A stretch of DNA of 64,000 bases from Lepidodermella squamata. Its lineage: Eukaryota > Animalia > Gastrotricha. Shown here in pieces: positions 3,751 through 45,102 of this stretch. Location of the stretch: assembly GCA_047495785.1 (NCBI GenBank), contig JBLDXI010000025.1:1674001-1738000 (forward strand). Direction: 5' to 3'. Made by a program: the position numbers and the translations under genes. The notes beneath the pieces were generated by a model. That model was given only the letters and a program-made list of their open reading frames with translations, was not told the DNA's origin and did no database searches. The stretch's first letter is position 1, and the number at the start of each line of letters is the position of its first letter.

Positions 3751-6726
3751 ATGGCATCGCTCATGAGCCGTGCTGTAGCCGGTAGCCGTCTGCTGGCTGC
3801 GTCTGGTCGCCTCCAGTCTCAAGCTCGTTCTTTTTCATTCGGTTCGATATTCAAGCTACCTTAAATATTCCCAAAATAATTTTACCAAATTTTCTCCATA
3901 CAGAATTGAATGAAGAACAGAAGCAGTTCCAGGAGATCGCGCGCAAATTCTCGCGCGAAGAAATTTTGCCGAAAGCGGCTCACTACGACAAAACGGGCGA
4001 GTTCCCGAAGGAGCTGTTGAAGAAGGCGTGGGAAATCGGCCTCATCAACATGAGCATCCCGCAGGCGGCCGGCGGTCCTGCCCGCGGCGTCTTCGACGAA
4101 ATCGTCGTCGGCGAAGAACTCGCCTACGGCTGCACGGGCGTCTCAACCGCCCTCACCGGCACCGGCCTCGGCCAGACCCCGGTCATCCTCGCCGGTAACA
4201 AGGAACAACAGAAAAAGTACCTCGGCCGACTCATCGAGGAGCCCCTCATCGCCGCGTACTGCGTCACCGAACCCGGTTGCGGGTCGGATGTGGCCGGTAT
4301 TCGGACGACGGCCGTGAAAAAGGGTGACAAGTGGGTGCTCAATGGCCAGAAAATGTGGATCACGGGCGCCGGTCATGCCAACTGGTATTTCGTCCTCGCC
4401 CGGTCCGACCCGAACCCGAAGGCGTCGACCGGCAAGGCCTTCACGGCTTTCATCGTCGATCGCGATTCAAAGGGCGTCTCAGTCGGCCGCAAGGAGATCA
4501 ATATGGGCCAACGGGCGTCGGACACACGTGGCGTGACCTTTGAAGATGTTGAGGTGCCGAAGGAGAACGTGCTGGGCGCGGAGGGGTACGGCTTCAAGAT
4601 TGCGATGGGCGCGTTCGATGTCACGCGGCCGTTTGTTGCCATTGGCGCCGTTGGGCTGGCGCAGCGTGCCTTGGATGAGGCCACGAAATACTCGCTCGAA
4701 CGCAAGACCATGGGCAAGGCAATTTTCGAACATCAAGGTTTGTGCGACATTTAAACGTAATTTTTTAAAATTCGCTTGAAAAAAAACGAGTCAAATTAGC
4801 AGCTTCATTGTCAGTAACTGAGGGGCTTTTAGGGGTTTACTCATTCGAGCAAACTTTAAGGAAGTTTTTCCCGTCTCAGAATGGTTTCAAATTATTTTTT
4901 CAAAAATGTTCGCGATTTTACGTCACAAATTCCGACTGGCGCTTCGTATTCATTTCATGTTAAATGGAGCTAAATGTCCCTGAGAACGTGCTTCAGAATG
5001 GCAGAAACCCTAACTTGGAAAAGTCGTAGTAATAGTGCCACCGGTCGTGGGAACCCAAGTGCGTAACTAACGCCTCTTCTAAGATTATCGTAGCTTTCAA
5101 GGGCGGCAAATCATTCATGCGGATCATCAGCTCAGAATCCATGGCGTCGAACCTCAAGGGCCTCAGTGGATTCGCCACGGTTCCGTAAACGGAACCGAAA
5201 AACTCGGCAACCGATCACCGGCCAGGCTAGAGGCGAGGAACCGATACCGGTCTTCGTTCGTCCAGTATCGCTTCAAGCCAAGCGTTAGTTGCCTAGAATA
5301 TAGATAGATTTTCAAGAACGAGTGTTTCAAGGTTAGAATAACACTTGAGGAGTATTAGCTAAGTGAAGAGTTCAGCCGACATGGAGTCTTCTAGTTTGTT
5401 CGTATTGAGTTTGAGTCGACAGCAATTCTAGAGTTAGACAGTCTCATTTATTACGTACTCTGGTGAGCACTGTGAAATAGTCGAGAAGTTCGTCCTTTGC
5501 CGCGCAATTCTTAAAGATGGGTTCAAAATTGGTTTACCCGAGGTCATTATTTCGAAAACATACCTGCAAGCGATTGAACATCGTCGAGCCGCCGGAGTCA
5601 GCTGGCTCCAGGGCATGAAGCGGTGAACCCTGACTTTCGCTGCCTGCGGGCTCCCACAACGCCTATTGTATGGACATCGCTGCGTTCCTTCAATTCCATT
5701 CCCACTAGGCCCTAGACGAGGGCTACCCGGGTTACGATTACGCTCACCGGATTCTGGTTATGTTATCATATTCAGGGTTTGTGAAACGAGCAAGATTAGC
5801 CGTGTTGATTAAGCTATTCAATTGCAAAAAGAGAGATAGAATAAATTCTAAGAGAATAAACTGTATGGACTGTATCTGACGGTATATAACGCGCCAGGGT
5901 GGAAGTAGCCTTCCACCTGCTGAACCACCGGCTGATCGTCCAGCGCCAGGCCAACCGCATCGTCGCCGAACATGAGGTAAAACTCAAAAATGGGTTCTTG
6001 CGACATCAATTTTTCAAACCATACCCGCAGTGCTGAGAGACTTAGTGTCGGCTCACGGAAAAAGTAGCTGAAGTGGTCGCGACCGATTATGTGCGCCATT
6101 TGCAAAATGTGATGTACGCTCTAAGAGAAAACAGTAAAGTCATGCCGCCGATCGAACTACGTCTTTCAATTGAAAAAGCAAGAGTTTTTGAAATATTAAG
6201 GAAATTTGGAGTAAATAGCTGCAAATAAAGAAACAGCCCGTTTCAAAGAAATCGTATTCCATGAACCCTCTGGAGTAGTGGCATTTGATTCAGCAAGCGC
6301 ATAGTTCTGAGTAGCAAAAAATGGCTTCGCCAGCCCAGAAACTAGCTTGGGCGAGCTTTCGAGCTCAGAAAAAAACGTTATTAAAATTTAATTGGTTTAA
6401 TTTTAATTTAAAATATTTAAAATATTGCGTATGGAAATTAATTTGAAAAAAATGGAATTATAACCATTTATCATGACAAATTGTGGAAAATTCATGATTT
6501 AATTTTTTTAATTTGTTCTGTTTTTTCTAGCCGTTGCCTTCATGCTGGCTGACATGGCTATCGGCATCGAAGCGTCGCGCTTCTGCACGTACCGTGCCGC
6601 GTGGGAAATCGACCAGGGCCGCCGCAATACTTACTACGCGTCGATCGCCAAGGCGCTCGCCTCGGACGTGGCCATGAAGTCGGCGACCGATGCCGTGCAG
6701 GTGTTTGGCGGCGCCGGCTACAACAC

Positions 6727-10010: not shown

Positions 10011-13000
10011 TGTGAGAAATATTAAAATTTAGGTCATTTCACGTCGATTGTGATGAGCCCTGTAAAACTTTTGGGGCCGAACGTTACAGTGAAAAAGCCC
10101 ATCAGAGAACGAACAAGTACCCCTTGTTCGATAAATTTTTTCTATATGAACTAAAAGGCGCTAAAAATGAGCGACTTCGAAGCTGTAGACCAAAAATTTC
10201 ATGATGTGAAAATACATTTTGGAAAAAAATGTTGTCCCAGTTTTCCAACTTATAACATCAAACTCAGCAGCAATATGAGCGTAGGCGGGATGAAATGTGT
10301 AAAAATGGGAATTCAGTCGAATAATAAAATCTGAAATAATAAATTTTAAGGTGGACGCGGACTGGGCGAGCATATGGTTTTAGTGCGCTCGCACCTGGTG
10401 TGGCTAGTGAGGCGCGACGCGGCCGGATAATCCCGGTTTAGCGGGCACTCTAAAAAATAATACGCGCTACATTTCTCGTGCGCGACAGTCAGATGGTGTG
10501 TGTAATAACATGAAGAGTGCTAAGCATAACGCAGCCGCCTGATGCTGATAATGACGAGCTTAGCTTGGTGACGCGCAGCGAGAAAACAGGCGCTTAACGC
10601 ACACGCGTTCCCATGCCGCCGCGCAAAACACGCGACATCATTATTTTTGCGGCGCGGCGGTGGCTTTGAGAGAGCGAGATGACGATGATGATGTCTCATC
10701 ATGTCAATAATCATAACCACAACAACAACACTAAAACAACACAGGACTTTCCGCTACTGCGCTATGGTTACAACTATATATATATACTATATAATGCCTG
10801 GGGTAATAATTTTTGCGTGTGGCCTATTCCCACGCACGTAGTAGCCCGAAATTTTAGCGGCTTCTAAACGTAGGAGTCATTATCCGTGGGAACTGCATTC
10901 AGTTAAGTGGAGCCTCCAATATAGGGTGCCGAGATGTGTAACTGAGCTGCTGTTTGTACACGCTACGTGTAATGTACAAAAACTACCTATATATTACACA
11001 CCAGGCACTCACTCAACGACACCTGCAAGAAATCGCCATAGCAACGATTTGTCGAGTGCGAGAAAACCACAAGTAACCTGCTGTAGGCTGAAAAATCGTG
11101 ACTTAAACCCGGAGAATACCGAGCGCCTGAAACCGGTATTTTCGGTTATTGATAACGAAACCCGGTTCTGCGGTGATAAACACGCGGAACCAGGCCGTGT
11201 TTGCCTACGCGTCACCGATGATGGGAAAGCCTGTTGAGGCCGGTCGACTAACAAATTGGGGTTGCGCAACGCGGTACCTTTGAAGCCAGCAGGTGCTGGG
11301 CATGATACAACGGCGCTGGCAAACATCGCTTCCACAAACACTGAAACCATCTATAGGCGGAGGATAGATCAATAAAAATGCTGGGCCAATCTCAGCTAAG
11401 ATGAAATTTTTGAAAAAATGTAAAAAAATCTAGGGCAAAAATGTCTTCCAGACTTCGAAACGCAAAAATATTGGGGTTTCATGGTACAGGTTTTGGACTT
11501 CGATAGCAGTGATGCGCGCCTATCAGGTAACGTGCAAGTACCCCTTGAGCGATAATTAACGCAGTGCGCGAAAAATTGCAATTTTTTCTGGTAGTTATTG
11601 GTGTTTGTTTACTTCGACGGTACCTAATTAGCAAAAAACTGTTTACAAAGCGGGCAGCAATATATCATAGGAGGCTGGCCTTTATCGCTTTGGCACTTTG
11701 AAATTTATTGTTGTGAGAAGACATCGTAGGCGGCGGCTATCTCTCGCTCGCTCGCGGCCTCAACCTGTCAAGTTTTTAGGAGCGGCCGCAAGTTTTTGCA
11801 CGCAGTAAGCGTGGGCCTGAGTGGCGGCGAACATGAGAAACACGAGAGACGTCATTTATTAATATTATTACTTACTATACTTAATAATAATAACACCACA
11901 TATTAACTGAGAGAGAGCGATAATAGCTGTCTACAACAAGCCATATTATTATGTGGGAAACGAGCGCTTTTACGCTGGGAATGTGAATCATTGCAACAAA
12001 GCGGCGTAATAACATAACGACGCGTGAGAAAAAATTCGGTCCAAATAAATAAAAAGTAATAAATTGAGGCGACCGACATTCGTCTCTGGATTTCGCCGCT
12101 GATAGTGCGCTTCTCGAAGCGTAATTATCATTAGGTAATTGATGTTATAACGCATCCCAAGGCCATGGGAATCATTGAGTGCGCGCAATAAAAAAATAAA
12201 GTTCGAACTTGCGCATTTCTCACACACACCCACCTTAAATTGGCGTGCAATAAAATCTGGAAAAACGTATTTTCCAGCCTATAAATTCGAGTTGGTCGCA
12301 ACGAAACTAGCAATTTTTCATCTGGCTCAAACATTTGGAAAAAAAATATCTGACAAGTGGTACTTGATCGATAGTGCATAAGCATATTTGAGGGTGGTCT
12401 GAAAATTAATAATAACTACAGAAATAATGCAAATTGACTCCAAATTGCCTGAATCGTGAAATTTTGTCACTCCCTGGTATTAAGTTGGAAAATCCTGTCG
12501 ATCGAAAAATGTAGCGAAGATGATATGTTTTTACGGCGGTGTAATAATGCCTTGATGCGCGTCTAATATAGTCGATGTTTGTATAAATAGCGACGACGGC
12601 AGACTTCCGTGGGAACGTCGCCCGTCTGGCCTAGAGAGGCGCACGCATTGTGAGCGGCTCAGCTCGCCCGCAAAACGGGACACGCATGTCACCCATGTAT
12701 TTGCGTGTAACGTGTCACTTACAAGAGCCCTTGCCGCTATGTTCGAACGGTGACGAGCGATCATCGTTAGGACGCCTTTTTCAAACAACAGCGCCCTGCC
12801 TATATAAAGGCTCCGCTGTGTATTAGCGGCGATGCGGAATGCCCGCGCGGTGAATGTTCGGGGTTATTGCATGTATGAATGCGTAAAACTGTAATGCTGT
12901 GTTATATTATTGGTATTAATTTATTTCCCTATCGTCTCACGCGCGCGTGATAGGGCCCTAAGCGCGCGCAGGTGGGGGCGTCGTGGGAAAGAATTCGAAT

Positions 13001-17012: not shown

Positions 17013-17708
17013 CTAGTAGTTGCAGTTGATTTCTTGATCGATTTTCCGCTTCCCGCATGAACCGATCAGCTTCCACTCGAGATTGTTAATTTGACGACCG
17101 GCTTCCTTTGAAACACGACTGCCGTAGTTGGCTGAGTTTGTATTTGGGACAGAGTCGGAAAATCGGCTCAAATTCTCAGGCAGCGGCTCGCGCTCAATCG
17201 GGTTGCCCTAAATAAATAAAAAATTATTAAAATAATTTCAACTATTTTTCAAAAAGTATCAAAATTATAGGCTAATATTTTGAAAAAAAAATTAAATTTT
17301 TGTGAGATGATGGAATTTTTTTGATTTAATTAAATTTTAATTGCTTACCTTTGCATCGAATTCTGCCAAAAAGCCCCAGTTGACTTTCCACAATTTGACA
17401 GACTCCTCTTCCTTATCGACTCTGAGGACGTGGAGGCGGTCCTTGGTGACAAAATCCGTTCGAAGTTCGTCCCAACTCGTCGGCGGCCGTTTGCCATCGC
17501 CGACAATGCGAGCAGCGGCGGCTTGGCGTCGCTCGGCTGGGACACAGGCTTGATGGCGTGAGCTTGAAAGTAGAGATAACACAATTTCATAAACAAATAG
17601 CTCTTCATATTTCAAAGTGTCAATAAAATTAGAGGTGATAAATATTATGGCCCTCATAAATTACCTGGCAGCAGACGCGGCTCGGTAATGCGAAGCGAGT
17701 GTGGCCAT
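17013..17708 (-). CDS. CIMIP5: Ciliary microtubule inner protein 5 (C2orf50) homologue, 3 exons
   Basis: Spliced product ...LWKVNWGFLAEFDAKGNPIEREPLPENLSRFSDSVPNTNSANYGSRV matches C2orf50 WxxNWSFLKDYDPxGNxKExEKLP...FSDTVPSSTNQxxGSR as I remember it. GT-AG junctions keep the frame. Confidence 0.85.
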
Positions 17709-18585
17709 TTATTTTTGTAAATTTTTCTGAATTTTTTCCAGAAATATAACGAACTTATATCAGAGGCGTCGCGCGTGATCAAGGTAGCAAAATTATTTGT
17801 GAAAAATGGGCGTCCTTTGACTGTCAATGCATAGCGACCGGGGTCGTTATTTTCTTTCAATTAAATAGCGCGCTTGAGACGTTTTTTGATTCATTCATCC
17901 ATCATCTGAAGAATCAAAAACAAAACACGCTCGGAAGCTGTAAGAGTGCGTAAATACGGGGGCCAATTTGCGAGTGTTGACAAAACATTGACGTCGATTG
18001 TTGACCGCGTTGTGCTTCCTTTTTCGCCCCATTACGACGTTTTTGTTGTTATTTTTTTTCCATCGCGCGCGCGCACGCCTTTTGTTATATAGCTGATTTC
18101 AGCAATCAGCGGTCAGCCGCGTGTGTTGACCAGCGGCGTGTTTTTCGCCATCAATCATCTTTCATCGCGCCCGGTGGGAGGCGAGCGTAATCGTAATTAT
18201 TATGCATACCTACCTGTGTGTATAATCTCTAGTTTTGTTTTCGCTCGACAAGACGACATGTATCGATAATAACAAAAATGCGACAAAAACAACAATAGCC
18301 CAAGTTTCCTAAACCTCAAGATCCTGAAAAAACTCACTCGTCTGTTTTGTAGGCGAAAGGAATGCCGTTGACCAGCTCGCGAGACATTGTAGCAGCAAGA
18401 TTGTTCGAGTTTATTCAAGCTTTAGTGCAAAAAGTTTGAACAAAAGGAAGAATAGCTAAACATCGCATCGTTTTTTACACGAGTCTCCAAGGGTGACACA
18501 ATCGATATCTGTTTCATATTCGCCGGTCGATTTTTATCGACAGTTTCCATTGACACTAAATCGTCATTACAGTTTTATTATTGTA

Positions 18586-20274
18586 TCAAAATTTGACGCC
18601 TGATTTTGACAGTATGTATTTAGCAACTTCAGCCGCTGTTGAGTTTGATTGATGGAGAAATTTTGCTGCTCGCAATTCGCGGGGAGTTGGCCATGTCCAG
18701 TGAATGGCGTTCGCGTCGCCTCGTTTCCAGTCAAAAGATTCCGCCGGGGGCTCAAAACGCACCTCTTTATAGCCATCAACCCACGAGGGATGGTAAAACC
18801 CTTGATAGGCAATTACTTGAAGTCGTCTATCGATTTTAACACTGGTGGGGTATATTTCATAGACCTTATAGGCCTTTAAACAGATGTAGCACCATAGGTT
18901 AGGTCCAACTCCATCGACAAAATCATGCATTGCGTTCAAAAGATGTTTCAAGTAAGGCGCATTAGGTTTGGTAACCATCGCTCCGAGATTCAGTGTGTCT
19001 GGGTACGGCTTTAAATGATTCGGCCAGTCCAACGATACTACAGTGTCATACTGCCTTAACTCATCATCCAAAGGCTTCACCCATACAGCATCCCAATCTA
19101 GAGTATCAAATAAAACAGTTATATAGGATAGAACTGAAAGAGTTAGCTTACCTGTGTAAATTCCTCCGTACTTGAGGAGGATGGTCATCCTTAACACATC
19201 TGACATCGGCGAGAGTTTAGTTACAGGACGGCCGAATACCGTTTTCTGCTGGGGTCTGTAAATGTAATGCAAGCGTCCTTCGTAGCTCTCTTTCAGCTCG
19301 ACCCAGTAAGGCCCCTTCGGCTCCTCATCTCCATGCACCAGGACTGAATTTGCTCTCAGAATGTTGAAGCAAGAAAGGATGCTTAGGTACAACAGGAATT
19401 CCATGGTACCACCCCCTAGCCAGATGTAATGGCAGAGCAATGGAGCTAGACTTTGGGGATTAGGAACAGGCACCAGAACATCTGTAGTCCCGTAAACTAC
19501 TTGTCGGACCAATCTGGCAAAAACTGAGTCACTTTCGAAGAATTCAGCAGGGTAGGAATCCTCAGGAGCTGTTACAAAGCATCTGGGCAGTGCTTTTGCT
19601 GGTTTTTGATTGATTTCAACTATATCGCAAGGCAATGAAGCTGCCGAGGCATTGACTGTCATTCTTTGATTTGAAATAATACTTGCAAGTGCTGATGTGG
19701 AGATTATGTTTGCTCCTAAGGAAATCCCATCGGAGTTTACCTCCACACTGGCTGAACCATTAGTTCCTTTGGAGCAGTAGTCGGGTAAGGAATTTTCCGG
19801 ATTCAGAATAAAGTTATGCACTGAGTTTGAAAGCTCTTCCAACCAAGTGTTATATCGCAAGGAGTCAACTTCAGGCATAGACTTGTAGAAATGGAGGTAG
19901 ATGAGATCGGGGTCGAAAGCCAAGATCGCGCTTTTCACAGCCACGAAGTTCTTGAAGGTAAAACTAGCTGGCGTGGTTTCGCACCACATCACGTGAACGA
20001 CATTCGGAATTCCAGAAAAAGGTTTTGAGTCTGGTATCTCTGGGGTAGGCAGAGTGGTAGACAATTTCGCTGTAGTGACCGTTCTCGACAGTTTCGGACC
20101 TCCCGCTGTCTTCAAGAAAGAACTATAATGCTCTGCGAGTTGTGGTAAGGAATATCCTTCTTCCACGTGCAAGACTGGTAGTAGGATGTAGAATGATATC
20201 GGAAGGGATAGCAAGACAGCCAGAACAAGTATGCATCCTAATCTGACTCCAGCGCATCCATTGGGAGACTCCAT
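18586..20274 (-). CDS. Type II Golgi glycosyltransferase, GT32/DxD (alpha-1,4-GlcNAc-transferase-like), with two tandem GT domains; in-frame intron 19098-19151
   Basis: N-terminal TM helix, IPNVVHVMW and PLLCHYIW domain starts, and SDVLRMTILLKYGGIYT|DWD once a 54-nt GT-AG intron is removed. Confidence 0.88.
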   Translation of the reverse strand: MESPNGCAGVRLGCILVLAVLLSLPISFYILLPVLHVEEGYSLPQLAEHYSSFLKTAGGPKLSRTVTTAKLSTTLPTPEIPDSKPFSGIPNVVHVMWCETTPASFTFKNFVAVKSAILAFDPDLIYLHFYKSMPEVDSLRYNTWLEELSNSVHNFILNPENSLPDYCSKGTNGSASVEVNSDGISLGANIISTSALASIISNQRMTVNASAASLPCDIVEINQKPAKALPRCFVTAPEDSYPAEFFESDSVFARLVRQVVYGTTDVLVPVPNPQSLAPLLCHYIWLGGGTMEFLLYLSILSCFNILRANSVLVHGDEEPKGPYWVELKESYEGRLHYIYRPQQKTVFGRPVTKLSPMSDVLRMTILLKYGGIYTGKLTLSVLSYITVLFDTLDWDAVWVKPLDDELRQYDTVVSLDWPNHLKPYPDTLNLGAMVTKPNAPYLKHLLNAMHDFVDGVGPNLWCYICLKAYKVYEIYPTSVKIDRRLQVIAYQGFYHPSWVDGYKEVRFEPPAESFDWKRGDANAIHWTWPTPRELRAAKFLHQSNSTAAEVAKYILSKSGVKF

Positions 20275-20323
20275 TTCTCATCTTATAAACGACTAAAATT
20301 GATGAAAAATTCTGAGAGATTAT

Positions 20324-21264
20324 TTATGTTAACTCGACAATGGCTAGCAATGCTGGGTATCGCCAATTTCTTCTAACAGTTATAAGTAAGTTTCTGAATA
20401 GGGTTGACATAGCAACTTCTGCAACACGGCCAACCTTCGCGACTCTGCTCAATTCCTGATGGTCCATAAGAATCGTAAAACCGTCGGATAGTTTTAGATC
20501 ATCGCTTTGTACATCTGAGAAAGGAATAACAGGATCAGCGGCTATGTCTTCGTAATGCATGCCAACGAAAAGACCAGGCTCAACTTTGATCCTGTGGCAA
20601 AGCATCAATCGTTTGAATTTTGTTCTTATCTCCGTTTACCTGTCGTTTTTTTCGATGTGATAAGTCACCCAACCCGGCGATCCATTCGTTGTAATTTTGT
20701 TGAAACCCATCCACGTGCCCTCATTAGAAAAACAAAATTAGTCATGATTGAGTCGCGAGCACTTCTTGATTACCTCGTCCTTAATGGCATCGTACTTGAG
20801 AACATCCAAAATAACAACCTTCCCCGGCGATGGATTCATGTCTAATATTCTCCAGGCCTCAATAAATCCATGACACTTGAACTGAAAGAAGAAAATAACG
20901 CTTGACTGAGCGGTCTGAAATCAGACAAAAAACATACAGTCAAGTTGAAAAATGCTTGAATTTCCGTTGAGGCTGATGAGAAACGACTATCGTCTTCATT
21001 TGATCCACAAAATCCAACGGAGCAATGTTCGCACAGAGTTGGGGAGTTGCCAGATTCTAGAACCAGTTTCTTGGGTTGGTTGTGATGTGATCGAGATCTA
21101 ATGTAATAAGACTCATTCTGTAAATGAGCAGCTCGAACTTTTGAGACGATGCGGAAAAGATCGAATGCTAAACTGCCGAAATACGCGACACCAACAAGTA
21201 GAATGGTCACTCCAGCAAACAGCAGCAGACGGCCGATTGGCAAAGGGCATACGTTACGAATCAT
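20324..21264 (-). CDS. Type II membrane protein of unknown function, 4 exons by manual splicing
   Basis: N-terminal TM helix. Three ~50-nt GT-AG introns join FFNLT|FKCHGFIEAWRI...KDE|GTWMG...NDR|IKVEPGLFVGMHY into one beta-rich luminal domain. Confidence 0.7.
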
Positions 21265-21526: not shown

Positions 21527-22024
21527 TCAGGTCTTGGATACCTTTCTTCTACAATTCATGTAAAATCGTTTAGCATGTAACAAAAATGATGCAATGCGTT
21601 GTGTTTGATGTTGCCGACTCTTGTCGGACTTTTTTCTCCTTCCGAGGACCAGCTTCACCCTATCAGCCTCAGAGCATGCAGCTCGCCGGTAACCTTCACA
21701 TTTCTTTGCCATTGACGTAACTGTGAAAATGTAGTCAAGATAGCCGCGAAAAGGCAGTTCTGGGGAAAGGTACACTGCACCATTCGCATCAGAAGCGTTG
21801 AAATCCAAAGTGCAGTATCGTCGTGAGAATCGTTTTGAGAAATCGACGAGCCGATTAAAGAAATCATCAGAGGTCAGTGGCTTGTAGAAAGTGTTTTCAA
21901 ACGAGGCTTCAGCATATTTCGCAGCTTTCATAAAAGGTTTGATCAAAGCAACGCTGCTTTCGACCATCAAGCCGAAGAGGGACAGCGAGAAAAAACCTGG
22001 AAGGAGAAGCTTTGAAAGCTTCAT
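21527..22024 (-). CDS. Secreted 4-Cys protein, family A member 1 (intronless)
   Basis: Signal peptide, SFENTFY, FSRRYC-x37-C-x7-C-x40-C. TATAAA about 55 bp upstream, AATAAA just after the stop. Confidence 0.85.
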   Translation of the reverse strand: MKLSKLLLPGFFSLSLFGLMVESSVALIKPFMKAAKYAEASFENTFYKPLTSDDFFNRLVDFSKRFSRRYCTLDFNASDANGAVYLSPELPFRGYLDYIFTVTSMAKKCEGYRRAACSEADRVKLVLGRRKKSDKSRQHQTQRIASFLLHAKRFYMNCRRKVSKT

Positions 22025-22539
22025 GACGAATGTTAGAAGCGATTAGTGTCAATTGACGATGGTATGAAAGTCGGCTTGATTTATAAGGTGCACTTAGGCA
22101 TCGGTTGCTAATTGAGCAGGCATCTGGCTTGAAATCGACACCCTGACTATATAAGCGCCATCCATAATTACAACTATTTGAGACTCTCTCCATACCATCG
22201 AAGCGACCAAGGACATATCGCATTTACAGCTTCCTGTATCAACTAAAATAAGCTAAAATAGACGACCCAGTTGAACTTGGGCACAACTTCGGGTCTAATT
22301 AGAGCCAGGATCGATGCGAATGGAATTTCCCGGCCCGCATCACGGATTAACCGGATAAACCGGATAATAAGTTGGCATTCCTCTTTGATTAGAAATTAGC
22401 TCATCATGTTTCCAATTAAATATCCCAGTCACGAGGTCATAAGCTACTAAATTGATCGTACAACTTGCACGATTGTTTCATCATACAACTTTATTCCGTC
22501 TTCAAGAAAAACCTACTGAATTAGAATTTATAGGTGGCT

Positions 22540-22776
22540 ATGCAGCGATTCTCTTGCATTCTAGTTGTTGCCTTCTTTGCTATGACCATCTTGTCTGCTT
22601 CAGCTGAAGAGACCTATGAACACGAAGATGAGCACGGCGACGACGCAAATGGCGGCATCGATGATAGGAAAAGGTCTCAAAATCAACAGAGCGGCCAAGC
22701 CAAGCATGAAGGATTGCGCCTGTTCAAAAATGCTGCACGCCAGCCAGTTATCCTCATGCGACCGAACTACTTCTGA
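22540..22776 (+). CDS. Prepropeptide: signal, acidic spacer, RKR site, ~33-aa basic peptide
   Basis: MQRFSCILVVAFFAMTILSASA-EETYEHEDEHGDDANGGIDD-RKR-SQNQQSGQAKHEGLRLFKNAARQPVILMRPNYF. Confidence 0.75.
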   Translation: MQRFSCILVVAFFAMTILSASAEETYEHEDEHGDDANGGIDDRKRSQNQQSGQAKHEGLRLFKNAARQPVILMRPNYF

Positions 22777-23224
22777 TCTCCAGAAATCGAAGTTTGATTT
22801 GAATCACTCAGTCATTAGCAGCAATAAGTTAATATAACGATATATTTTTCGGTGTTTTTCTGACTGAAGTGAAAACAGTCCGATGTTAAAAACCAGCTTT
22901 AACCGGCTTGGTTGAATTCGCGGCGTGTTGTCTTGAGTTTGTCATCTCTCTTTCTCATCTTGCATGTTGTCAGCTGTAACCTATGTCCAGGTTATGATTA
23001 TTAGCCGTTAATGAGCTGCTATCAATGTTTGTATCGAAGTTTAGCGGGGGACACCCTCTTATTTCCAGCTCCCCCACTTTTCTGTCGGGTTCACATTTTC
23101 CTAATAGATTTTGCCTGAGAAATTGTCTTTAAGGTTTATTTGATAATAAATAATGACGAAAATTCATCTTCACGACTCATCTCGACAAATAGATGAATAA
23201 TGATTAGTGCATTGTCGGATGAAA

Positions 23225-23662
23225 TCAAAAGCAATACGATGAGTGCAATGTGCTGTCGCGGACGAAGTCGCTCAGGTAATTAGCCTGCTGAGCCAATAAT
23301 TCAGGCGTTGGTTCATTATCCGTCGATTTCACGCTGCGTAGGTACGCCGCAGCTTCTGCGCACGCATATCGCAGTGCTATGCTGCAGCGAGCTGCTTTCG
23401 ACGTGGCCATTACAAAGTTGTGAACTCGAGCGCGGTTGGGAGCATGTATTATTCGATCAATATTCTCAGGCCGTGCTAGTTCGATTTGAATTTGAAGTGC
23501 GGAACAATAGCGATTCCTAAAATCCTCTAAGCGTTGAAGGGCATATGGAGCGAATGATGAGTAGTAGGTATTCTCGAACGAAATTTCAACTCCTTCCTCA
23601 GCCCGAAGAGACATGAATCTGCCGGAAAAAGCCAGCAAAGCGAAAACTACAGCGTGCATCAT
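23225..23662 (-). CDS. Secreted 4-Cys protein, family A member 2 (intronless)
   Basis: Signal peptide, SFENTYY (shared with member 1), FRNRYC-x39-C-x7-C-x42-C. Confidence 0.85.
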   Translation of the reverse strand: MMHAVVFALLAFSGRFMSLRAEEGVEISFENTYYSSFAPYALQRLEDFRNRYCSALQIQIELARPENIDRIIHAPNRARVHNFVMATSKAARCSIALRYACAEAAAYLRSVKSTDNEPTPELLAQQANYLSDFVRDSTLHSSYCF

Positions 23663-24300
23663 CTCAAGACTGTTTACTTAGAGAAGTGAATAAAAACAAA
23701 TCAAGTGTACCACGGTACCACAGTTAGCTTACCTACGTCACGCCTAATGGTGGACAAGACAACGGCTTAGATACGGCTTTTAGAATAATCCATATCCCGA
23801 GGATATTGCTATTGATCATGTCTACCTCAAACGGAAGGAGAGTTCTGGATAGAGAGGGTGGGCGTAGTGTTGTGGACACGGAACTGCCGCATCCCCTGAA
23901 GGTTTGAGTTTTGTCCTTTGTATGAAATGTGATATACGTATAAGGACACAACAGTTGAAATATCGTGTTCTTTTATTAATGTACAAAGATCTATGCATTG
24001 CGTAGCGACGCCGGGATTGAACATCATAACAATAGAACCCGAATTGAACCTTTTCAGCTGACATCTAGCCAGCAAATTTTATTTCGAAAATAAGGACCGC
24101 CTGGAAAAATCAGCTGATTTTACCGTAATAAAGTAATGGTTCCATTGTTAAAAAGTTTTATTCAATCTCGGCGTCACTATCGTACAAAATGGATGCTAAT
24201 GGTGTGAATAGAGCGTAAATGGTGGTAACAGAAAATATGGTGACCCAAGACCCAAGCCAAGGGAGTATATGAATTTATTTATCAATTTATTGAATCTTGC

Positions 24301-24806
24301 TCAACTTCGACCGTTGCTTCTAGTATGGTGCATCGCCGGAACGCAGTAACTGGCGAATAAGTTGACATCTTTACCAAAGGCGTCCATGTACCGTTTTGCG
24401 CTTTCGATGTGTTGCGGAGATGCTGCTGCATAGACCGGCGCCATTTCAATGGCAACAAAAGCCTTCGCACAGACGTAACGCCTAATAGCATAGCATTTCA
24501 TCGCTTTTGACGAAGTCTGGGCAGTTAAAAGCGGCAAATAATTCTCAAACGGTGTCTCCAATAGCTCTACGTGGTCTTGAGCGGGAAGTTGTGAACAGTG
24601 ACGCTTGCGAAATGCCTCCGCATAGCTGGCTGGATTCTTATGATTTGCTTGATGAAAGCTTTGCGAAATCTGTAAAATATAATAATTGTATAAATGATTA
24701 GCCGATTGCGATGAAATCAGCATACCAATCCATTTCTTAAGACGGATCTATGCCCATGAGCTACGCTGCATATCATCAAAGCTAGAAAGAAACAGACTGT
24801 AACCAT
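24301..24806 (-). CDS. Secreted 4-Cys protein, family A member 3 (intron 24670-24725)
   Basis: Exon 1 MVTVCFFLALMICSVAHGHRSVLRNGL splices in phase 0 to ...FRKRHC-x33-CYAIRRYVCAKA-...-YC. Confidence 0.85.
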
Positions 24807-25251
24807 CTTTAGGCGAAATAAAACAAATGATCATTGAAAGATGCAGTATAAATGAGCGCCTGCTATAACGCGTTGGAGGTTGGGACGTGACATTATCGGC
24901 TCGACGAGAAATAATTTCAATGTAAAACTCCGCTTTTGGAAATCGATACGAGCCCACATAGCACGGCTCATACAGTTTCGACACTCCTTCGAGCACTAGC
25001 CACCCCCCGAGTTTGATCGATCTTGAACGTGGCGAAAGCAACTCGGCGCCATCAAATTAGCAGTGGTCATTTCACCTTCTGAGCTGGTCAACTGGTTTAG
25101 AAATTGAGGGCGTTGAGCAGTGAGCAGCTTAATTCAATTCAAACAACGCAATTTTCTTAATCCCAAAACGCGGGGATGAACTTTATTTTTTGAAAATCTA
25201 AACATAGCCTAGCCTCTGCGGAAGATGATCCTTTGATTTCAATTTGAGATG

Positions 25252-25704
25252 CTAATAAGATATACGGTCATACGTAGGTTTTGTGTCGAGAATACAATAA
25301 TTTGAGTAAAACTTCACATCTTTGAGGTAAGCTTCGACAAAACGGAAAATTGTCCGCCATTTTGTTGATCCACCGAGATACTTGGTGTTGAGAATACTTA
25401 ACAGGTAAGCCTTTGCGCAAACGTATCTCTTGATTCCAAAGCATTTACCAGATCGTGAGCGAATTGTTTTAAGGTAGCCCAAGTAGCTAGCAAAAGGTAA
25501 CTCCAGCATCTCCATGTGATCTCCGACAGTGAATATTTCGCAGTGGCGACGTCTAAATGACATGGCTCGCTGTTGGGCTTCATTTAGGCCTTTCCGAGAG
25601 TAAAATTTATAGCCTAGATTTGACGTGTTGAGAGGAGGCGATATTGAATGAGCGCAGCAAATAATCCCGAGCAGGGCAGCAGAAACGGCTACTGTCGCAT
25701 TCAT
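25252..25704 (-). CDS. Secreted 4-Cys protein, family A member 4 (intronless)
   Basis: Signal peptide, FRRRHC-x32-CFGIKRYVCAKA...KDVKFYSNYC. Confidence 0.88.
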   Translation of the reverse strand: MNATVAVSAALLGIICCAHSISPPLNTSNLGYKFYSRKGLNEAQQRAMSFRRRHCEIFTVGDHMEMLELPFASYLGYLKTIRSRSGKCFGIKRYVCAKAYLLSILNTKYLGGSTKWRTIFRFVEAYLKDVKFYSNYCILDTKPTYDRISY

Positions 25705-26346
25705 TGCCTCGACAATAATTTTTCAAATTATGATTAGGTAATAAAAAAAGTAATGGCGATGAACACGTTGCCTGTTGGTCTTGTGATCGCTGCATGTTTC
25801 GACGAAGCCGCTCTAAGCGGAGGATAATAGCGTAGACTCCTACAGGATAGCTATCAAATAGCTCCACCCCTGCAAATGTTTAGTCATGTAGTATCACACA
25901 TATCACTTCGCGTGCGTAATTCTTATTTTAATGCTCCGCATCTCGAACAACCCCGTGACGTCCACACGCTTAGTAATCGATATGTTTTTTTCCCACTTCA
26001 AACTCGAGTAACACCGCAGGTTATAGCTTAAGAAGATATCCTTCTGATTTAACTTCTTCGCACTTGAAGTCACATTGGAATGCAATCAAGCAAAAGCTAA
26101 ATCAAATCCCGTACTCACGAGGAATCCATGCTATTAAAAGCGGGGTGGAAATCACTATTTTTGACCGGAAGAAATATTTCTCAAGTAGCTCACCCTAGAT
26201 CCAGTAACTCAATCCATCTTTTATTTATTTGAAATAAAAATATGAACAACATGAAATGAGAAAAAGGGTTAGGTTTTGCGACGCAGCTGATTACTAGGCG
26301 CGCTTGAAGCCGTCGTAGGTATACACATGGAAATAAGACGAAAAAT

Positions 26347-26884
26347 TTAAGCTTTTGCTATTACATTCATGCAGTAGTGTGAGTATTGATGTATATCTTT
26401 AAAGAAGTTGTCGATGAAACGTTTCGAGGAAGCAGCTTCTTTGGCGCTCAGCGTGGGCAACAATTCGATAACTACGTACGCCTTGGCACATACGTGCCTT
26501 TTAATTGTGTGGCATTTAGCTTGGCGTGAGCTTGACTTCACGGACTGGAGATACTCGACATACTTATCGAAAGGCATTTCTAGCATTTTCTGATGATCGG
26601 CAGCCGGTAGAGATGCGCAGTAGCGGCGCCGAAACATCTCGGCATACGTAACTGAATTCAGCCGGCTGCCTGTCCTTGGCGATAGGATCTGAGGTGCATA
26701 ATCGCTGTTTCTATCCTAAGAAAATGGGTTAAAAATGAGAAAAAAAATCGATAATTCCTCCGTAGAAACTCACTATCGGGGAGATTTCTATGTCTGCTTG
26801 AGATGAGCTGTCCAAACTAGCCGAGGCCATAAGACATAAACTTGAGGCGAGACTCAGCCAGTGGACGGATATCAACGGCGTCAT
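26347..26884 (-). CDS. Secreted 4-Cys protein, family A member 5 (intron 26716-26773)
   Basis: Exon 1 MTPLISVHWLSLASSLCLMASA... splices in phase 0 to FRRRYC-x34-CHTIKRHVCAKA...KDIHQYSHYC. Confidence 0.85.
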
Positions 26885-28137
26885 TTTCGCATGAATAAGT
26901 GCTTGTTGTAACTACAATAGGATGATAAAAAATAAGTCTAATTGACTTTCATACCCTATTTACACCGTGACAATCGCGACCCACGCGACCACTAATTACT
27001 AATTAATAATTCATGCTTAAATGGTTTCCTGAGCGGCCCAAGTTACTGCTAAGCAAGAAAAAACAACACTAAATACTAGTCCAGTGCGATATAAGTGACC
27101 AAAAGCATAACGCTGAATGAGTTCGCTATTAAATATTTCGCGGTAGTCATGGATATAAAATCATTTCCTAATTGAAGAGCAATTTGTGATAATTAATGTA
27201 AGAAATCAGGATGGATTGATGACAGTGTCATGCAGCACCAATCAAGCAATTAATGGCGAGCGTAGGTTAGAGGGGGCAAGTTCGCGATTGCCACTTGCTG
27301 AGATTAAGAAGAATTAGGCCAATTCAATAGCTCAACTATATTACTCACTACAACTGACGAGTGCAATCAAGTGGCTGGTTATACGAAATAGTATTACTGC
27401 CCAATATGAGGAAGCCGGATTAAAGAGCAGGAAATAAATTTCTCACGATTTCTGTATATAATGCTGCCGAAGACCGGAACGCTGTGGGTGAGCGTAAAAA
27501 GAAACATTTGTGCAGCTTACAACCTATCTACAACTCTACAGCTTACAATATACCCCTGATAGCTTCTACGTGTATAGTAACCTAAATTAGAATGTTTTGG
27601 AAAGGACAATTCAATTGAGACGACTGAAGGACGGCAAAGTTATTTAGCCTCCGGAAAGTAGCCTCTTGAGGCTCTTGAGCATGAAGTGCAGAGAGCACTG
27701 GGCGACCAGAGTAGGATTCAAGAGCAGCCGAATCCACGGCATTCTGATCATCAGATCAATCCATGCAGTAAGCGATCCAGCACACTGTCATTGAATAAGT
27801 AGGCGCAAAATACATCATTTTCTGATTGATTCGGTTTTCAGTGGCTTTATACTCTGATGGCGCACCTCGCTTCGGGATTTTCACAGCTTTCAGAGTTAAT
27901 GACCTGGCGGAAATGACGTTGCCGCATGGATGGATTACCTGGCAATTCGGAATCATTTGATTTTCGCATATTTGCGAAACAAGGATGCATCCGGTGAGCA
28001 CGTTTAAAGCAAAAACTATCCTTGCCTCTGACAGGGAAATCAGAAATAATGACTGATGAAAACCAAACTTGCTGATTCATTTAATCGAAGATCATTGTAA
28101 GGATTCATAAAATGATGAGACAATATATAAAGAATGA

Positions 28138-28732
28138 TCAATCCATCTTTCGCCTTTGTGGCTTGAATAACATTGTTAGATTAGTCGCTTGAAGTCTTGA
28201 ACCTTGGGAAGGAATTCGTGGCCCCGAAAACCTGCCTCCACCACAATAGGCTGCATATAGTTTGACGTCTTTAATAAAAGATCCGACGAATCGCCGTGAC
28301 GCCCAAACGTGGCTGCGTGCCATGGCTGGTGTCAAATCGCTGACAACTTGAGATTTGCCGCAAACATATCGCATCATAGACTGACAACGTTCCTCTTTTG
28401 ATGAAGTTGTTATCAACGTTTTGAAGAAGTCGTCATAACTGACTTCGACCATTCCAGCGTAGTCTTTTGCAGTAAATTTCCCGCAATGTCGCTTTCGGAA
28501 TGTATCAGCATAAAGAGATATTGCGTTTGTCTTGAAATCATTATGATTTCGCTAGGGCAAAGTTGAACAAATTAAAAGGAAAAATGTGGGGTGAAAAGCA
28601 TACTGCATTCTGAGGCACGGCTACGTCTGCTTCTGACCCTTCTTTGCTTTGGTCGATGGTCTCCAAGCTTTGATTCGGAGCCAACGCATCGGCTCTCAGG
28701 ACGAAGAATAAAATCATAGCATATTTTAGCAT
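28138..28732 (-). CDS. Secreted 4-Cys protein, family A member 6 (intron 28552-28603)
   Basis: Exon 1 MLKYAMILFFVLRADA... splices in phase 0 to FRKRHC-x32-CQSMMRYVCGKS...KDVKLYAAYC, followed by a basic tail. Confidence 0.85.
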
Positions 28733-40849: not shown

Positions 40850-41269
40850 TTAGTTTACTGGTGTAATGCAGTAGTTAGAGTAAAGCTGTACATCACTGAG
40901 CAAGCCGTTCATGATACGCGAGAGATTCTTGGAATTCCGCTTCGGCGCCGATGCAAGTCTAGCTACAACATAAGATTTCGCGCAGACATATCGCATGATC
41001 ATCGTGCAGCGGGATCTGTGCGATCGCTGTGTCATCAAACTAGACATAAAAGTGTCGTAGGACATGTCAGCGAGTCCAGACAATGATTTCGGATCCATGT
41101 GCACGCAGTGGCGGGCGAGGAAGGAATCGGCTTGTTTTGATAAAGGGTTTGACTTTCCCGCGATCAACTGCTCAGCGCTTAAATTTGATGAGCTAGCTTC
41201 CACGTCCGCTTCTTGGCTCGATGTATAGCTGGAAGCAATCAGGGAGAGAAAAATTATTCCTGATTTCAT
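40850..41269 (-). CDS. Secreted 4-Cys protein, family A member 7 (intronless, displaced ~12 kb from the array)
   Basis: Signal peptide, FLARHC-x32-CTMIMRYVCAKS...SDVQLYSNYC. Confidence 0.88.
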   Translation of the reverse strand: MKSGIIFLSLIASSYTSSQEADVEASSSNLSAEQLIAGKSNPLSKQADSFLARHCVHMDPKSLSGLADMSYDTFMSSLMTQRSHRSRCTMIMRYVCAKSYVVARLASAPKRNSKNLSRIMNGLLSDVQLYSNYCITPVN

Positions 41270-42154
41270 TATTAAAATCTAAAATCTAAAATTAAAGAAA
41301 AAATTGATACGGCATCATAACTGCTGGGATTGACGTCATTCACACCTTACGCACCCTGCTCCCTGGCAAACCCATTCCACCGTGTGAAATTTACGCGAAA
41401 GCACCTACGCATTTGCGGGGATATTGCACGACAGGCTTCGGTGAGCAGATTATTTGCTTAGTCTAGCGATGCATATTTATTGATGCCCGAAACTTGCCGG
41501 CGCCTGGCTTCGCTTTTATTGAAAGCGAGGGTGGAAATAAAAACTAACCTTGACTGACTCAGGTGCACATCAAGCGCATCAAGGCGCCCATATGCCTATT
41601 TGCACCTTGAAAAATATTGGATATAGCTATATGACAGTTTGGATTATTTATGAAGCCTGCTCGACCACAAAGGGCAATGCTTACACTGTTGAAACGAAAC
41701 GTTAGATCCTGGAAATTAAGGAGGCGCTCAGGGGCGAGTTGTTTACGGAGCAAAGCTACATGATACTCAGCTTTTCGATTTGCGTCGTATGAAATGTGAT
41801 ATGTGGGAGCGAGTGACTATTTGCCTGTTTGTTGGCTAATTATAGAAATTCCCCGGTCATGTTTGTGCATAATTAATCCCACTAACAGCCTTTGAAAGAG
41901 CTCTAAAATCTAAACTATAGGATACGTATCCTGTTCAAAACAAGTGGGATCGCTCTTTTTGCAATGTCGTCAGCAGTTACAATTTAATAGCCAGCAGCCA
42001 GTCTGGAACAGAGTACTTAATCACGCTAATGTAAAAAGCAGATCCCACGGCTCGTTTTGAGAGCGACGAAGGAGGATGAGCTGTCAATATGACTGAGTCA
42101 TTCACAAAAAGATACTCGCTAAATCGATGCATTTATTACCATAAAAACAAATAG

Positions 42155-43528
42155 CTAAATGTAAATTGGCTTCAAACAGTGCCCAGGACCGCATGAATTA
42201 GCACAACACATCAGACCGATCGAGCAGTCGCCATCTACTACACACTCAACTTTACAAATGTCGTCGTAGTTCAGAGTGATTCGCGGGCATATAGCACGAC
42301 GCATTGGCATTGGCGTTGGCGTAGTAGTAGTCTTTTCGGCAAACCTTGTATCGGCTTCCATAAAAGGGTCGAGGGAGCAGCAGCCATTCTCGCAGCAAAC
42401 ACGGCCCGAACCACACTGCTCGTCGCTTCGGCAGTTGCACGTTTCGCTGGTTAGGCTTTCATTTTCCGGGCAAATTGGGACGTGCATCATTTTCCCGGTT
42501 GAAGCTGCCCTTGAAAAAAAGTAATCTGGAGCTGCTGTTAGGCTTGGCGTTGAAGTAACACTACCCCTTGGCGTGCCAATAACGATTCTTATCCTGGGCG
42601 GTGTTGCTTCAGACCACGGCGAGAACGCTGTCCTACGGCTTGTAATGAGTTGGATCAAAGAAGTTGTAGTGGTTCTTAAAGTGGTTGTAGTGGTTCTCGT
42701 AATTCTTCTTAATGTTGTAGGATATATTGGGTACATGCAATGGCCAGGTCCACATGGATTTGAGCAGCACAGTTTCATCCCCGGGCAATCGCCATGGGTC
42801 TGGCAGTCAACCTCACATGTTCCTTCCATAGCAGCCTCAACAGGAGGGCAAACTCCGTCCTTGTCATCGTAGTAGTAATAATCGTCATCATCGGCAACAG
42901 GATATGTTACAGAATTAGGTTTAGCCGAAGTCCTGATAGGCCTCGGCCTGCTTGTTGTATATCGTAGTGCCGCTTGTTGGGTTGGAGCTGCTACACAGCG
43001 ACCGGCTCCGCATTGATTTTGACAGCACAGCAGCAGTCCAGGGCAGTCATAATCTTCACGACACTCCGTTTCACAAGTTCCTAGATAGCCAGACTGAGAT
43101 GTAGGGCAAGCCCCTGGCTTTTTCCTTGTCGTAGTTTCCTTTGTCGTCGTTGGCACTGTGGTAGTTGATCTAGTAGTCAATGTAGTAACTCGTGTCGAAG
43201 TTCTTTGCGTAGACCAGAAAATGCCACGTGCGGAACTGTTTGATCTGTTAGCGAGATAAACAAGGATAGGGACCATGCACTCCAGGCCACATCCATTTGA
43301 GCAGCACATTAAACGGCGCTCCTCGCATTTATTGCATTCATTTCGACAGTTGGGTCGTTCGCTCATCGTCACTCCAGGGCACTCGTACATCATCCCTTGA
43401 ATAGTGGTCAACCGGCCGATGATAGGTTGGCTGTTGATAGGAGCATAGCTTGAAACGAAGATGATTATACCAAAAATTGTGCATGAAACACAGCTCTGCT
43501 TGCCCACGTAAAAATCCATTAATCGCAT
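42155..43528 (-). CDS. Secreted multi-WAP (four-disulfide core) protein with Thr-rich linkers, intronless
   Basis: Repeated CP...C...C..D.DCPG..LCC.N.CG...C (for example KPGACP...CETECREDYDCPGLLLCCQNQCG), about 5 domains, with mucin-like Thr/Arg spacers. Confidence 0.9.
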   Translation of the reverse strand: MRLMDFYVGKQSCVSCTIFGIIIFVSSYAPINSQPIIGRLTTIQGMMYECPGVTMSERPNCRNECNKCEERRLMCCSNGCGLECMVPILVYLANRSNSSARGIFWSTQRTSTRVTTLTTRSTTTVPTTTKETTTRKKPGACPTSQSGYLGTCETECREDYDCPGLLLCCQNQCGAGRCVAAPTQQAALRYTTSRPRPIRTSAKPNSVTYPVADDDDYYYYDDKDGVCPPVEAAMEGTCEVDCQTHGDCPGMKLCCSNPCGPGHCMYPIYPTTLRRITRTTTTTLRTTTTSLIQLITSRRTAFSPWSEATPPRIRIVIGTPRGSVTSTPSLTAAPDYFFSRAASTGKMMHVPICPENESLTSETCNCRSDEQCGSGRVCCENGCCSLDPFMEADTRFAEKTTTTPTPMPMRRAICPRITLNYDDICKVECVVDGDCSIGLMCCANSCGPGHCLKPIYI

Positions 43529-43693
43529 TTGTGTAAAATTACTATCTTATTAATTTCGTGTTGTTGTGCTATAACTACGAGGACTGGGCTGCTGGTCATT
43601 AGTGCCCACTTGAGGCGTAAGGTTAACACGGTTTATAATGACGTTGGCGTGATTCATAACTAATTATGATAATGAGCTGATGATTACAAACAG

Positions 43694-44205
43694 CAGGGGT
43701 TTATCCAGCTTTTTGTCCGAGGGGATGGGTTGAAAAATCGAGGGGTTTTGGAGGTGAAATACAATTTAGCGCTCGCTCGCGAATAGCTACTTTTTCGACC
43801 CTATTATTCCATTTCATACCATTTTTATGAATAAAATAGCGCGATATGTTCGTTTTATAGATTTTTGTGGCTTTGTGCGGTGCGCGCGCTTAAATTTGGC
43901 CCTCAAAATGCGGCACGCAATACCTGTTACGCAACCAGCATTAGTGCGCGCGCTCATTATCATAGTCACAAGCTAAAGCTGAATATGCAAATTAGTATAA
44001 CAGTACTGTTTTAACTGTTTCGAGAAGGTCGATTAAAGAAAATACCATAATTCACTAACTGCGGTATGTTCTCTCAAGGCTGCCGCCCCTACGGGATCAG
44101 TCATGAATCATACAATACTGTCACTGGCCTTAATATTTAGGGGATGACCGCTCGGTTTGAGGGGATGGCCAGGGGGTGGTTAGGGGATGGCTGGATAAAT
44201 CTCTG
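43694..44205. mobile_element. hAT-type MITE, 512 bp
   Basis: 16-bp TIR CAGGGGTTTATCCAGC versus rc CAGAGATTTATCCAGC, with a perfect 8-bp TSD ACAAACAG at 43686-43693 and 44206-44213. Confidence 0.9.
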
Positions 44206-44251
44206 ACAAACAGCATGCATTTTCAATTGAAACTTTATTCTTTAGTCGCCT

Positions 44252-45102
44252 TCACACATAAATCGGATCTTGGCATCCCCATCCGCAGCCATTTGAGCAG
44301 CACAATTTCCCGATAGCAAGGCAAGCCGCAGAACAATTAGGGAGAACACTGCAGTCCCCGACAATGGGATTGTCAGGGCCGAGAACAGGACGAGGGCACA
44401 CGGCCTTCAACGGTGTCGTAGTCGGTGTCACAGCAGGGGCAGGAGTTGTGATATTGATGTATAATGGGTTCACACAAACCCTGAGACATCCATAGTTGCA
44501 GCAGAGCTTTCTCTGCGGACCACAGGCGTTGTTACACATATCCCCGCAAATCGGAGGATAATTCTCCGGTGGGATAACTGGGCAAGTCGGGAAAGACCCT
44601 GCCGTTACACCGAGTGTTGTCGACTGTGTAGTAGCTGCCGTCGAAACACTCATAGCAACAGTCATTGGACGTTTGCATACGGTGCCACCACAGCTACCAG
44701 AATCACAGCAAAGCTGCCCGCGTGTCTCGCAATCGAAACACATGTTAGCACATGTTGCTGGTTCGTCGGGGCGAAATGGCGGACAAACTTGTCGGAAGTA
44801 AATGCCTTTCGGGGTGACTGTTACTCCTGCTTTTGGTTCACAGGACACTCGATAGCCATCTACGTAGAACCGAGCCTCGCAGCGATTGTTACAGTAGAAA
44901 GGCCGACAAAATGCGTTTGGATAAGCTGGCAAAAACAAGAAATTCAGTAATTTCTCTTAAAATCCTTGCTTTAACCTTGACATTGAGCATTCTCGCAAGG
45001 ATCATTGCAATAAGCAGGCCTACTGCATGGCCTTGGATTACTTGATACCAGACAAGCACAAAAAGCGAGGAGATGGAGCAAAGTAAAAATAGTATTCGTC
45101 AT
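44252..45102 (-). CDS. Secreted Cys-rich protein with three WAP-like domains (intron 44926-44975)
   Basis: Exon 1 MTNTIFTLLHLLAFCACLVSS...YCNDPCENAQCQ|AYPNAFCRPFYCNNRC, then CP...C...C..C.....CC..GC...C repeats. The C-terminal PIYV resembles PIYI of the neighbouring gene. Confidence 0.85.

Follow-up and report, generated by a model that had tools for sequence, protein, structure and literature searches.

A tandem array of orphan secreted four-cysteine proteins with a predicted four-helix fold in the gastrotrich Lepidodermella squamata

The Family A array

We describe Family A, a set of seven genes for small secreted proteins with four fixed cysteines, in a 64,000-nucleotide stretch of the Lepidodermella squamata genome (hereafter the window: GenBank assembly GCA_047495785.1, contig JBLDXI010000025.1; G000:C25:1674001-1738000, within a 121-Mb, 151-contig assembly). 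Six of the genes (c1 to c6) stand in tandem between window positions 21527 and 28732, and the seventh (c7) lies at 40850-41269. An earlier note, made from the sequence alone, had listed seven such copies on the minus strand, and a six-frame scan of the window with the pattern [aromatic]-x-x-R-[HYF]-C-x(25-45)-C-x7-C-x(30-50)-C recovered exactly those seven, all on the minus strand. When the whole 121-Mb genome was searched with a profile of the seven copies, each copy scored an E-value of 1e-25 to 1e-33. A six-frame scan of the window with a hidden Markov model (HMM) found no extra copy and no decayed fragment. The seven-copy pattern is far beyond chance, and the Family A genes are almost certainly real, forming an intact, transcribed tandem array.

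In the core alignment the four cysteines are invariant, as are F1, R4, S34 and R44, and identity between members ranges from 12 to 56%, in keeping with the strong divergence around fixed cysteines that the earlier note had described. The alignment also bears out the minor motifs E/D-x-[PS]-[FY]-x-x-[YF], RYVCAK and D-[VI]-x-x-Y-x-x-YC, and the SFENTxY subfamily consists, as claimed, of c1 and c2. The motif F-x-[RK]-R-[HY]-C around the first cysteine holds in most copies but fails at its third position in c2 (FRNRYC) and c7 (FLARHC).

All seven N-termini are hydrophobic and signal-peptide-like; signal peptides here and below were called by eye from such N-termini. Each gene product is a signal peptide followed by a variable stretch of 15-60 residues, probably disordered, and a domain of ~100 residues. 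Four genes, all on the minus strand, have a single exon. The first, c1 (21527..22024), encodes 165 amino acids of the SFENTFY subfamily (core 21551-21829; profile E-value 8.6e-25), and c2 (23225..23662) encodes 145 of the SFENTYY subfamily (core 23231-23521). The protein used for folding comes from c4 (25252..25704; 150 amino acids; core 25294-25557), and c7 (40850..41269; 139 amino acids; core 40868-41122) is directly downstream of a WAP-mucin gene.

The remaining three genes, also on the minus strand, have two exons each, a correction to the earlier note, the signal peptide being encoded by a short upstream exon. Their introns are very short (52-58 nt). The intron of c6 (gene 28138..28732; exons 28604-28732 and 28138-28551; 180 amino acids; core 28243-28500; profile E-value 1.3e-33) spans 28552..28603 (minus strand), and a spliced cDNA contig bears it out: record 7 of sequencing run X1 joins 28551 to 28604, skipping 52 bases that read GT..AG on the minus strand (CT..AC on the plus strand). 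This joint has a depth of 95.7 in the cDNA run and is not present in the DNA run X2. For c3 (24301..24806; exons 24726-24806 and 24301-24669; 149 amino acids; core 24343-24612), an in-frame GT-AG model predicts a 56-nt minus-strand intron at 24670..24725 (GTATGC...ACAG) that links the signal-peptide exon (MVTVCFFLALMICSVAHG) with the domain exon. A change in X2 at 24688 would create a stop if coding and falls inside this predicted intron, which therefore supports the intron model. For c5 (26347..26884; exons 26774-26884 and 26347-26715; 159 amino acids; core 26371-26634), a 58-nt minus-strand intron is predicted at 26716-26773 (GTGAGT...TTAG), with no spliced contig among those listed.

Transcription and constraint

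Expression and sequence differences were compared over 6,000 bases that hold c2 to c6, with c1 and c7 outside. Run X1 is taken as cDNA because its contig ends carry SMART primer sequence; run X2 is DNA from a strain or sibling ~1% diverged. X1 contigs lie over all five genes examined, at 23062-23636 for c2, 24250-24849 for c3, 25160-25761 for c4 (where the contig ends are the SMART cDNA primer) and 26250-26849 for c5, as well as over c6, and most intergenic bins are without any listed contig. Neither a Pfam family (see below) nor a lack of transcription, the two outcomes named beforehand as fatal to the family, was found; cDNA covers five of its seven genes.

Between 22850 and 26779 every difference is on the list, as checked against per-contig counts. 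Over this interval X2 differs at 9 sites in ~1.66 kb of c2-c5 open reading frame (ORF) and at 28 in ~2.06 kb of non-coding DNA, which is thus ~2.5 times more diverged than coding DNA. Eight of the nine ORF differences are synonymous, and the ninth (24688) is the one inside the predicted c3 intron. By gene, c2 shows zero coding differences against X2 and c3 five (all synonymous); c4 has three coding differences (all synonymous) and c5 one, likewise synonymous. The single coding difference seen only in X1 and the one listed for c6 are both synonymous, so that all ten coding-sequence differences against X1 and X2 are silent. By our estimate, which assumes that a quarter of changes are synonymous, ten of ten would arise by chance about one time in a million, and the genes are therefore under strong purifying selection. 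In dN/dS comparisons across species and among paralogues, the synonymous sites proved saturated, with a proportion of synonymous differences (pS) of 0.73-0.89.

A search of the regions upstream of the 20 genes of the family (see below) found no common promoter motif, and only A/T-rich words recur. A perfect palindrome resembling a cAMP response element (CRE), TGACGTCA, is a candidate element in 41270-41390, ~60-70 nt ahead of the c7 start codon, and the ACGT-core words GTGACGTA, TGTCACGT and TGTCACGG occur upstream of c2, c3 and c5. Between c1 and c2, an ORF of 80 codons on the plus strand (22534-22776) opens with a clear signal-peptide-like segment, is very acidic in its middle part and contains a KR site, and may be a small secreted peptide precursor; a cDNA contig of depth 145 lies just downstream of it at 22850-23091. 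In the gap between c5 and c6, cDNA contigs of depth 2-6 at 27153-27568 show six "opposite strands" joints ~100 nt apart. A repeat search of this 1.2-kb gap found no repeat structure and no inverted repeat, and the contigs may be a cDNA assembly artefact or an unannotated structured transcript.

A second cluster and distant relatives

The seven copies listed in the earlier note are not the whole family. Two weak matches to the first profile, ~375-380 kb upstream on the same contig, lie in a second minus-strand cluster at C25:1288064-1303491 (loci L015, L017, L016, L008 and L026), which holds 13 further intact genes and one fragment ~370 kb away from Family A. All of its members have hydrophobic N-termini and the four-cysteine layout of Family A, and they fall into two groups, one marked by "RCQKI..CAKA..YY.NVC" and the other by "W[YLH]xxxC". 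Aligned with hhalign, Family A and the second cluster match with a probability of 97.4% and an E-value of 1.3e-11 over 80 columns. Both clusters share a signal peptide, an aromatic-basic-x-basic-aromatic-C1 motif, C2-x7-C3 on one predicted helix, an aromatic-x-x-x-C4 near the C-terminus and a basic domain. On the evidence of sequence, the two clusters form a single superfamily with at least 20 intact genes, all of which lie on the minus strand of the same contig. A whole-genome profile search found no copy beyond the two clusters.

To find relatives in other genomes, 1.84 billion protein cluster representatives were searched with an HMM, which returned only four (P0001 to P0004), none of them named. 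They come from a BUCK21 metagenome contig, a Logan run assembly and one ENA metagenome, the last supplying two proteins. Two scans of JGI metagenomes found no relative. A word-based homologue search with core and full-length alignments gave no match, which is uninformative since that method needs shared words and a length window. A maximum-likelihood tree puts P0001 together with c3, P0003 with c4 (support 95/91) and P0002 beside c6. As these relatives pair with single paralogues, the duplications that gave rise to c3, c4 and c6 predate the split from those species.

Database and fold searches gave no specific match, in agreement with the earlier claim that no known domain can be recognised. 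Against Pfam-A (24,736 models), with full proteins and 18 core domains at lax thresholds, no family rose above its gathering threshold; eight weak matches (E-values 0.0015-0.26; for example, Ectatomin and Viral_DNA_Zn_bi) each concern short stretches of one member. A sequence profile search of the PDB gave no match. Foldseek and VIA-align found no specific match, with no cytokine or saposin-fold chain among the top 50 rows, and an ESM Atlas feature search with c4, c7 and one member of the second cluster gave scores of at most 0.78 and no consistent family. A literature search for a comparable family in rotifers or other invertebrates turned up no relevant description.

Predicted structure

The helical character that had been read from the periodicity of the sequences is borne out by AlphaFold2. 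The 88-residue core, modelled from seven sequences, is all helical (predicted local distance difference test, pLDDT, 89.7; predicted template modelling score, pTM, 0.78). Mature c4 (130 residues), modelled from 19 sequences of both clusters and the environmental relatives, gave a pLDDT of 85.9 and a pTM of 0.77, with helices at 17-34, 40-60 (kinked at 49-50), 64-84 and 93-118 and poor order over residues 1-16. The inter-helix loops of this model are 5, 3 and 8 residues long, and loops of 3-8 residues imply an up-down arrangement; the domain is thus very likely a compact up-down four-helix bundle, as far as the models go. A homodimer prediction for mature c4 scored 0.00, with controls not run, and is evidence neither for nor against dimerisation.

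Helix 2, with K/R-C-x7-C-A-K, is the central spine of the predicted model, and helix 3 ends in Y-x-x-[YV]-C. Because C2 and C3 are both on helix 2, eight residues apart, they cannot bond to each other. C1 follows helix 0 and C4 lies at the end of helix 3, from which we infer the pairing C1-C3 and C2-C4. Judged from topology only, these disulfides would fasten helices 0 and 3 to helix 2. All 18 core domains examined are basic (isoelectric point 8.7-10.1, net charge +3 to +10), and the N-terminal regions have no consistent charge (-6 to +9).

The basic motif ahead of C1 raises the question of processing. A furin-type cleavage at F-R-[KR]-R would free a three-helix, four-cysteine hormone or toxin of ~85 residues and make the N-terminal part a propeptide. 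In favour of this, R-[KR]-R or K-R-R stands directly ahead of [HY]-C in c3, c4, c5, c6, P0001 and P0002. Of the 11 sequences of Family A type, 6 have the site. The N-terminal regions are variable, with those of c2, c5, c6, d2 and d5 acidic. In the c4 model, however, the F-R-R-R-H motif forms the end of helix 0 (pLDDT 94-97), which contributes the fourth helix to the bundle, and the 8-12 residues ahead of it are an alanine-rich, amphipathic helix conserved across both clusters. A motif inside helix 0 is therefore probably not a convertase cleavage site. Many members, furthermore, lack a dibasic site altogether (FLARHC, FRNRYC, FELRYC, YRATFC, FRQQHC and FYQQYC), most of the second cluster among them, and the charge of the region ahead of the motif is not consistently acidic. 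We regard such cleavage as improbable; the basic motif would instead be a structural part of helix 0.

Comparison with known proteins

Several families of small helical secreted proteins resemble Family A in part. Class I helical cytokines and hormones (of the growth hormone, leptin and IL-4/GM-CSF type) are also secreted four-helix proteins with two disulfides and a domain of ~100-130 residues, and they form multigene families of receptor ligands. Their helices run up-up-down-down with long crossovers, unlike the up-down-up-down order and 3-8-residue loops predicted for Family A, and these short loops argue against the classical cytokine topology. With the wrong topology in the predicted model, no sequence similarity and no cytokine in the top 50 fold rows, a class I helical cytokine was rejected. 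Plant invertase and pectin methylesterase inhibitors (PMEI, PF04043) are likewise secreted up-down four-helix bundles of ~150 residues with four cysteines and two disulfides. Membership in that family was judged by a match to PF04043 together with its N-terminal helical extension and two disulfides, and this combination was not found.

Saposin-like proteins (NK-lysin, granulysin, amoebapores, caenopores) are small, secreted, often cationic, all-helical and stapled by disulfides, and their families have expanded in invertebrates, where they are used in defence. They have six cysteines (four in granulysin), of which the middle pair bridges a helical hairpin. Family A has four, with C2 and C3 at i and i+8 on one helix, and no SapB_1 or SapB_2 match; this candidate too was set aside. 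Abalone sperm lysin and sp18 are likewise basic, secreted helical bundles, and they diverge rapidly from one species to the next. Lysin, by contrast, has five helices and no disulfides, the fold search gave no match to it, and the polymorphism of Family A is purely synonymous.

Secretoglobins (with the androgen-binding proteins) and insect odorant-binding (OBP) and chemosensory (CSP) proteins are small, helical, disulfide-bonded and secreted, and stand in tandem arrays of strongly diverged paralogues. The cysteine spacing of these families differs from the C-x32-39-C-x7-C-x37-42-C of Family A. None of them gave a sequence, Pfam or fold match, and all were rejected for want of any PBP_GOBP, OS-D or Uteroglobin match. 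The likeness does bring up a reading of function, in which Family A proteins would be carriers or sequesterers of small hydrophobic or charged ligands (lipids, sterols, chemical cues) in body fluid or mucus, as functional analogues of the odorant-binding and chemosensory proteins, secretoglobins or nematode FAR proteins. Small, helical, disulfide-stabilised, secreted, tandem and strongly diverged, the proteins have the general look of carrier families. On the other side, no member matched the Pfam families PBP_GOBP, OS-D, uteroglobin or FAR at E-values up to 5, many conserved positions are charged and form no hydrophobic lining, and a cavity would not be expected in a tightly stapled, short-loop bundle of ~100 residues. 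A carrier role is doubtful on balance.

The WAP neighbourhood and synteny

Immediately upstream of c7, at 42155..43528 on the minus strand, is a gene for a multi-WAP, threonine-rich secreted protein with three WAP domains (Pfam WAP, E-value 8.5e-26). Together with 44252-45054, also on the minus strand, the interval 42155-43528 accounts for two secreted multi-WAP four-disulfide-core proteins with threonine-rich, mucin-like linkers. On the environmental contig that carries P0004 (L010), a WAP gene at 4645-5400 is followed by a family member at 5521-5907, in the order and orientation seen at c7, and the adjacency of WAP and family member is kept in L010-L013. The stretch 6900-10936 of L010 is collinear with window positions 17013-20884 through five flanking genes of 55-68% protein identity. 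P0004, by comparison, shares just 23-30% identity with c7 and c6; the family diverges much faster than its neighbouring genes, its members nonetheless being retained.

Relative to L010 (4687-10936), the WAP and four-cysteine pair of the window (40946-45054) lies ~20 kb from 17013-20884 and in inverted orientation; either the segment with the Family A and Family B arrays was inverted, or it was inserted between the pair and the flanking block. Where the start of the array would fall on L010, at 11385-11800 on the minus strand, there is a weak family match that may be split. The other genes of the window are of animal type (ANF-receptor, WAP, Cys-loop receptor ligand-binding domain, ankyrin, GDT1 and acyl-CoA dehydrogenase), and the medium-chain acyl-CoA dehydrogenase is 68-73% identical to those of molluscs, insects and echinoderms alike, none of the named sequences being close to it. 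A rotifer spliced-leader pattern had no match in the genome. On the plus strand, 49140-52601 and 55076-58537 are a tandem duplicate, with a period of ~5.9 kb, of a two-gene unit: a 201-residue ankyrin-repeat protein followed by a 793-residue single-exon protein with an ANF-receptor ligand-binding domain.

The WAP neighbours bear on two further readings. In the first, Family A proteins would be defence effectors, cationic disulfide-stabilised helical proteins on epithelia or in the gut that bind anionic microbial surfaces and act alongside the neighbouring WAP proteins, in the manner of NK-lysin, granulysin, caenopores and WAP antimicrobials. The domains are uniformly basic (+3 to +10), their predicted helices are amphipathic, the tandem family is large with deep divergence between paralogues, the WAP adjacency of one member is kept in two species, and evolution is faster than in flanking genes. 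Several features speak against such a role. There is no saposin-like cysteine pattern and no Pfam or fold match, and, with three of its four helices fixed by the two inferred disulfides, the bundle would have little scope to open as lipid-active helical proteins do. The C1-C4 core without the motif is near neutral (0 to +1) in c2, c3, d11 and d12. Finally, the window holds no pseudogenes, the relatives are one-to-one and polymorphism is purely synonymous, unlike in typical birth-and-death immune arrays; with purifying selection, this makes Family A less like a fast-turning effector or toxin array. A defence function is rated as rather unlikely.

The second reading would place the proteins in an extracellular matrix, an egg envelope or an adhesive, or make them inhibitors on the surface of such a matrix, deposited with the threonine-rich WAP-mucins. 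These mucins are probably O-glycosylated and likely anionic, the basic proteins adjoin them, and further arrays of secreted, cysteine-rich proteins abound in the window. Yet the proteins have no repeats, low-complexity or cross-linking motifs, the even number of cysteines in the domain leaves none free for polymerisation, the structural match is under the noise level for helical proteins, and only one of the at least 20 intact genes adjoins a WAP gene. This reading is improbable.

Functional interpretation

As a first choice, held tentatively, we propose that Family A proteins are extracellular signalling ligands. They would be stable, soluble ligands or binding proteins outside the cell, each paralogue with its own partner, and not enzymes, polymers or toxins that open membranes. 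Most likely they would be signals that act at short range or through the water and are recognised by specific receptors. Small, stable, soluble and secreted, without catalytic motifs, repeats or unpaired cysteines, the proteins fit specific extracellular binding, and so does the fact that each paralogue is old and conserved. A stronger version, which we put forward with less assurance, is that they form an undescribed class of animal ligands, a stapled up-down bundle unrelated to the helical cytokines, with at least 20 paralogues and receptors of their own. Water-borne cues between conspecifics or tissue hormones are examples of what such ligands might do.

Several points weigh against signalling ligands. 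The relatives returned by the HMM search include no homologue with a known function, the disulfide pairing is read from where the helices lie, and the fold is predicted from a shallow alignment of 7-19 sequences. An identity of 23-30% against 55-68% for flanking genes of the L010 species is unusual for hormones, and four copies carry a textbook furin motif, R-[KR]-R, at which they may be cut. Arrays of cationic, helical, secreted proteins beside WAP genes would suit an antimicrobial role equally well. The earlier suggestion of a toxin, pheromone, cytokine-like or host-effector family stands insofar as Family A is a secreted, unrecognised and helical one; the roles themselves are not established by the analyses run.

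In summary, Family A is a solid orphan secreted family that matches nothing described. Orphan secreted families are common in under-sampled animals, and the value of this one lies in the combination of clean gene models, evidence of constraint and a structural model, which enables experiments. If the fold holds, it is a compact, very stable and easily expressed four-helix, two-disulfide scaffold without a described relative, diversified into 20 or more conserved paralogues within an animal lineage nearly without functional annotation. Their partners would reveal signalling or defence of a small aquatic invertebrate through proteins that are invisible to homology-based annotation.

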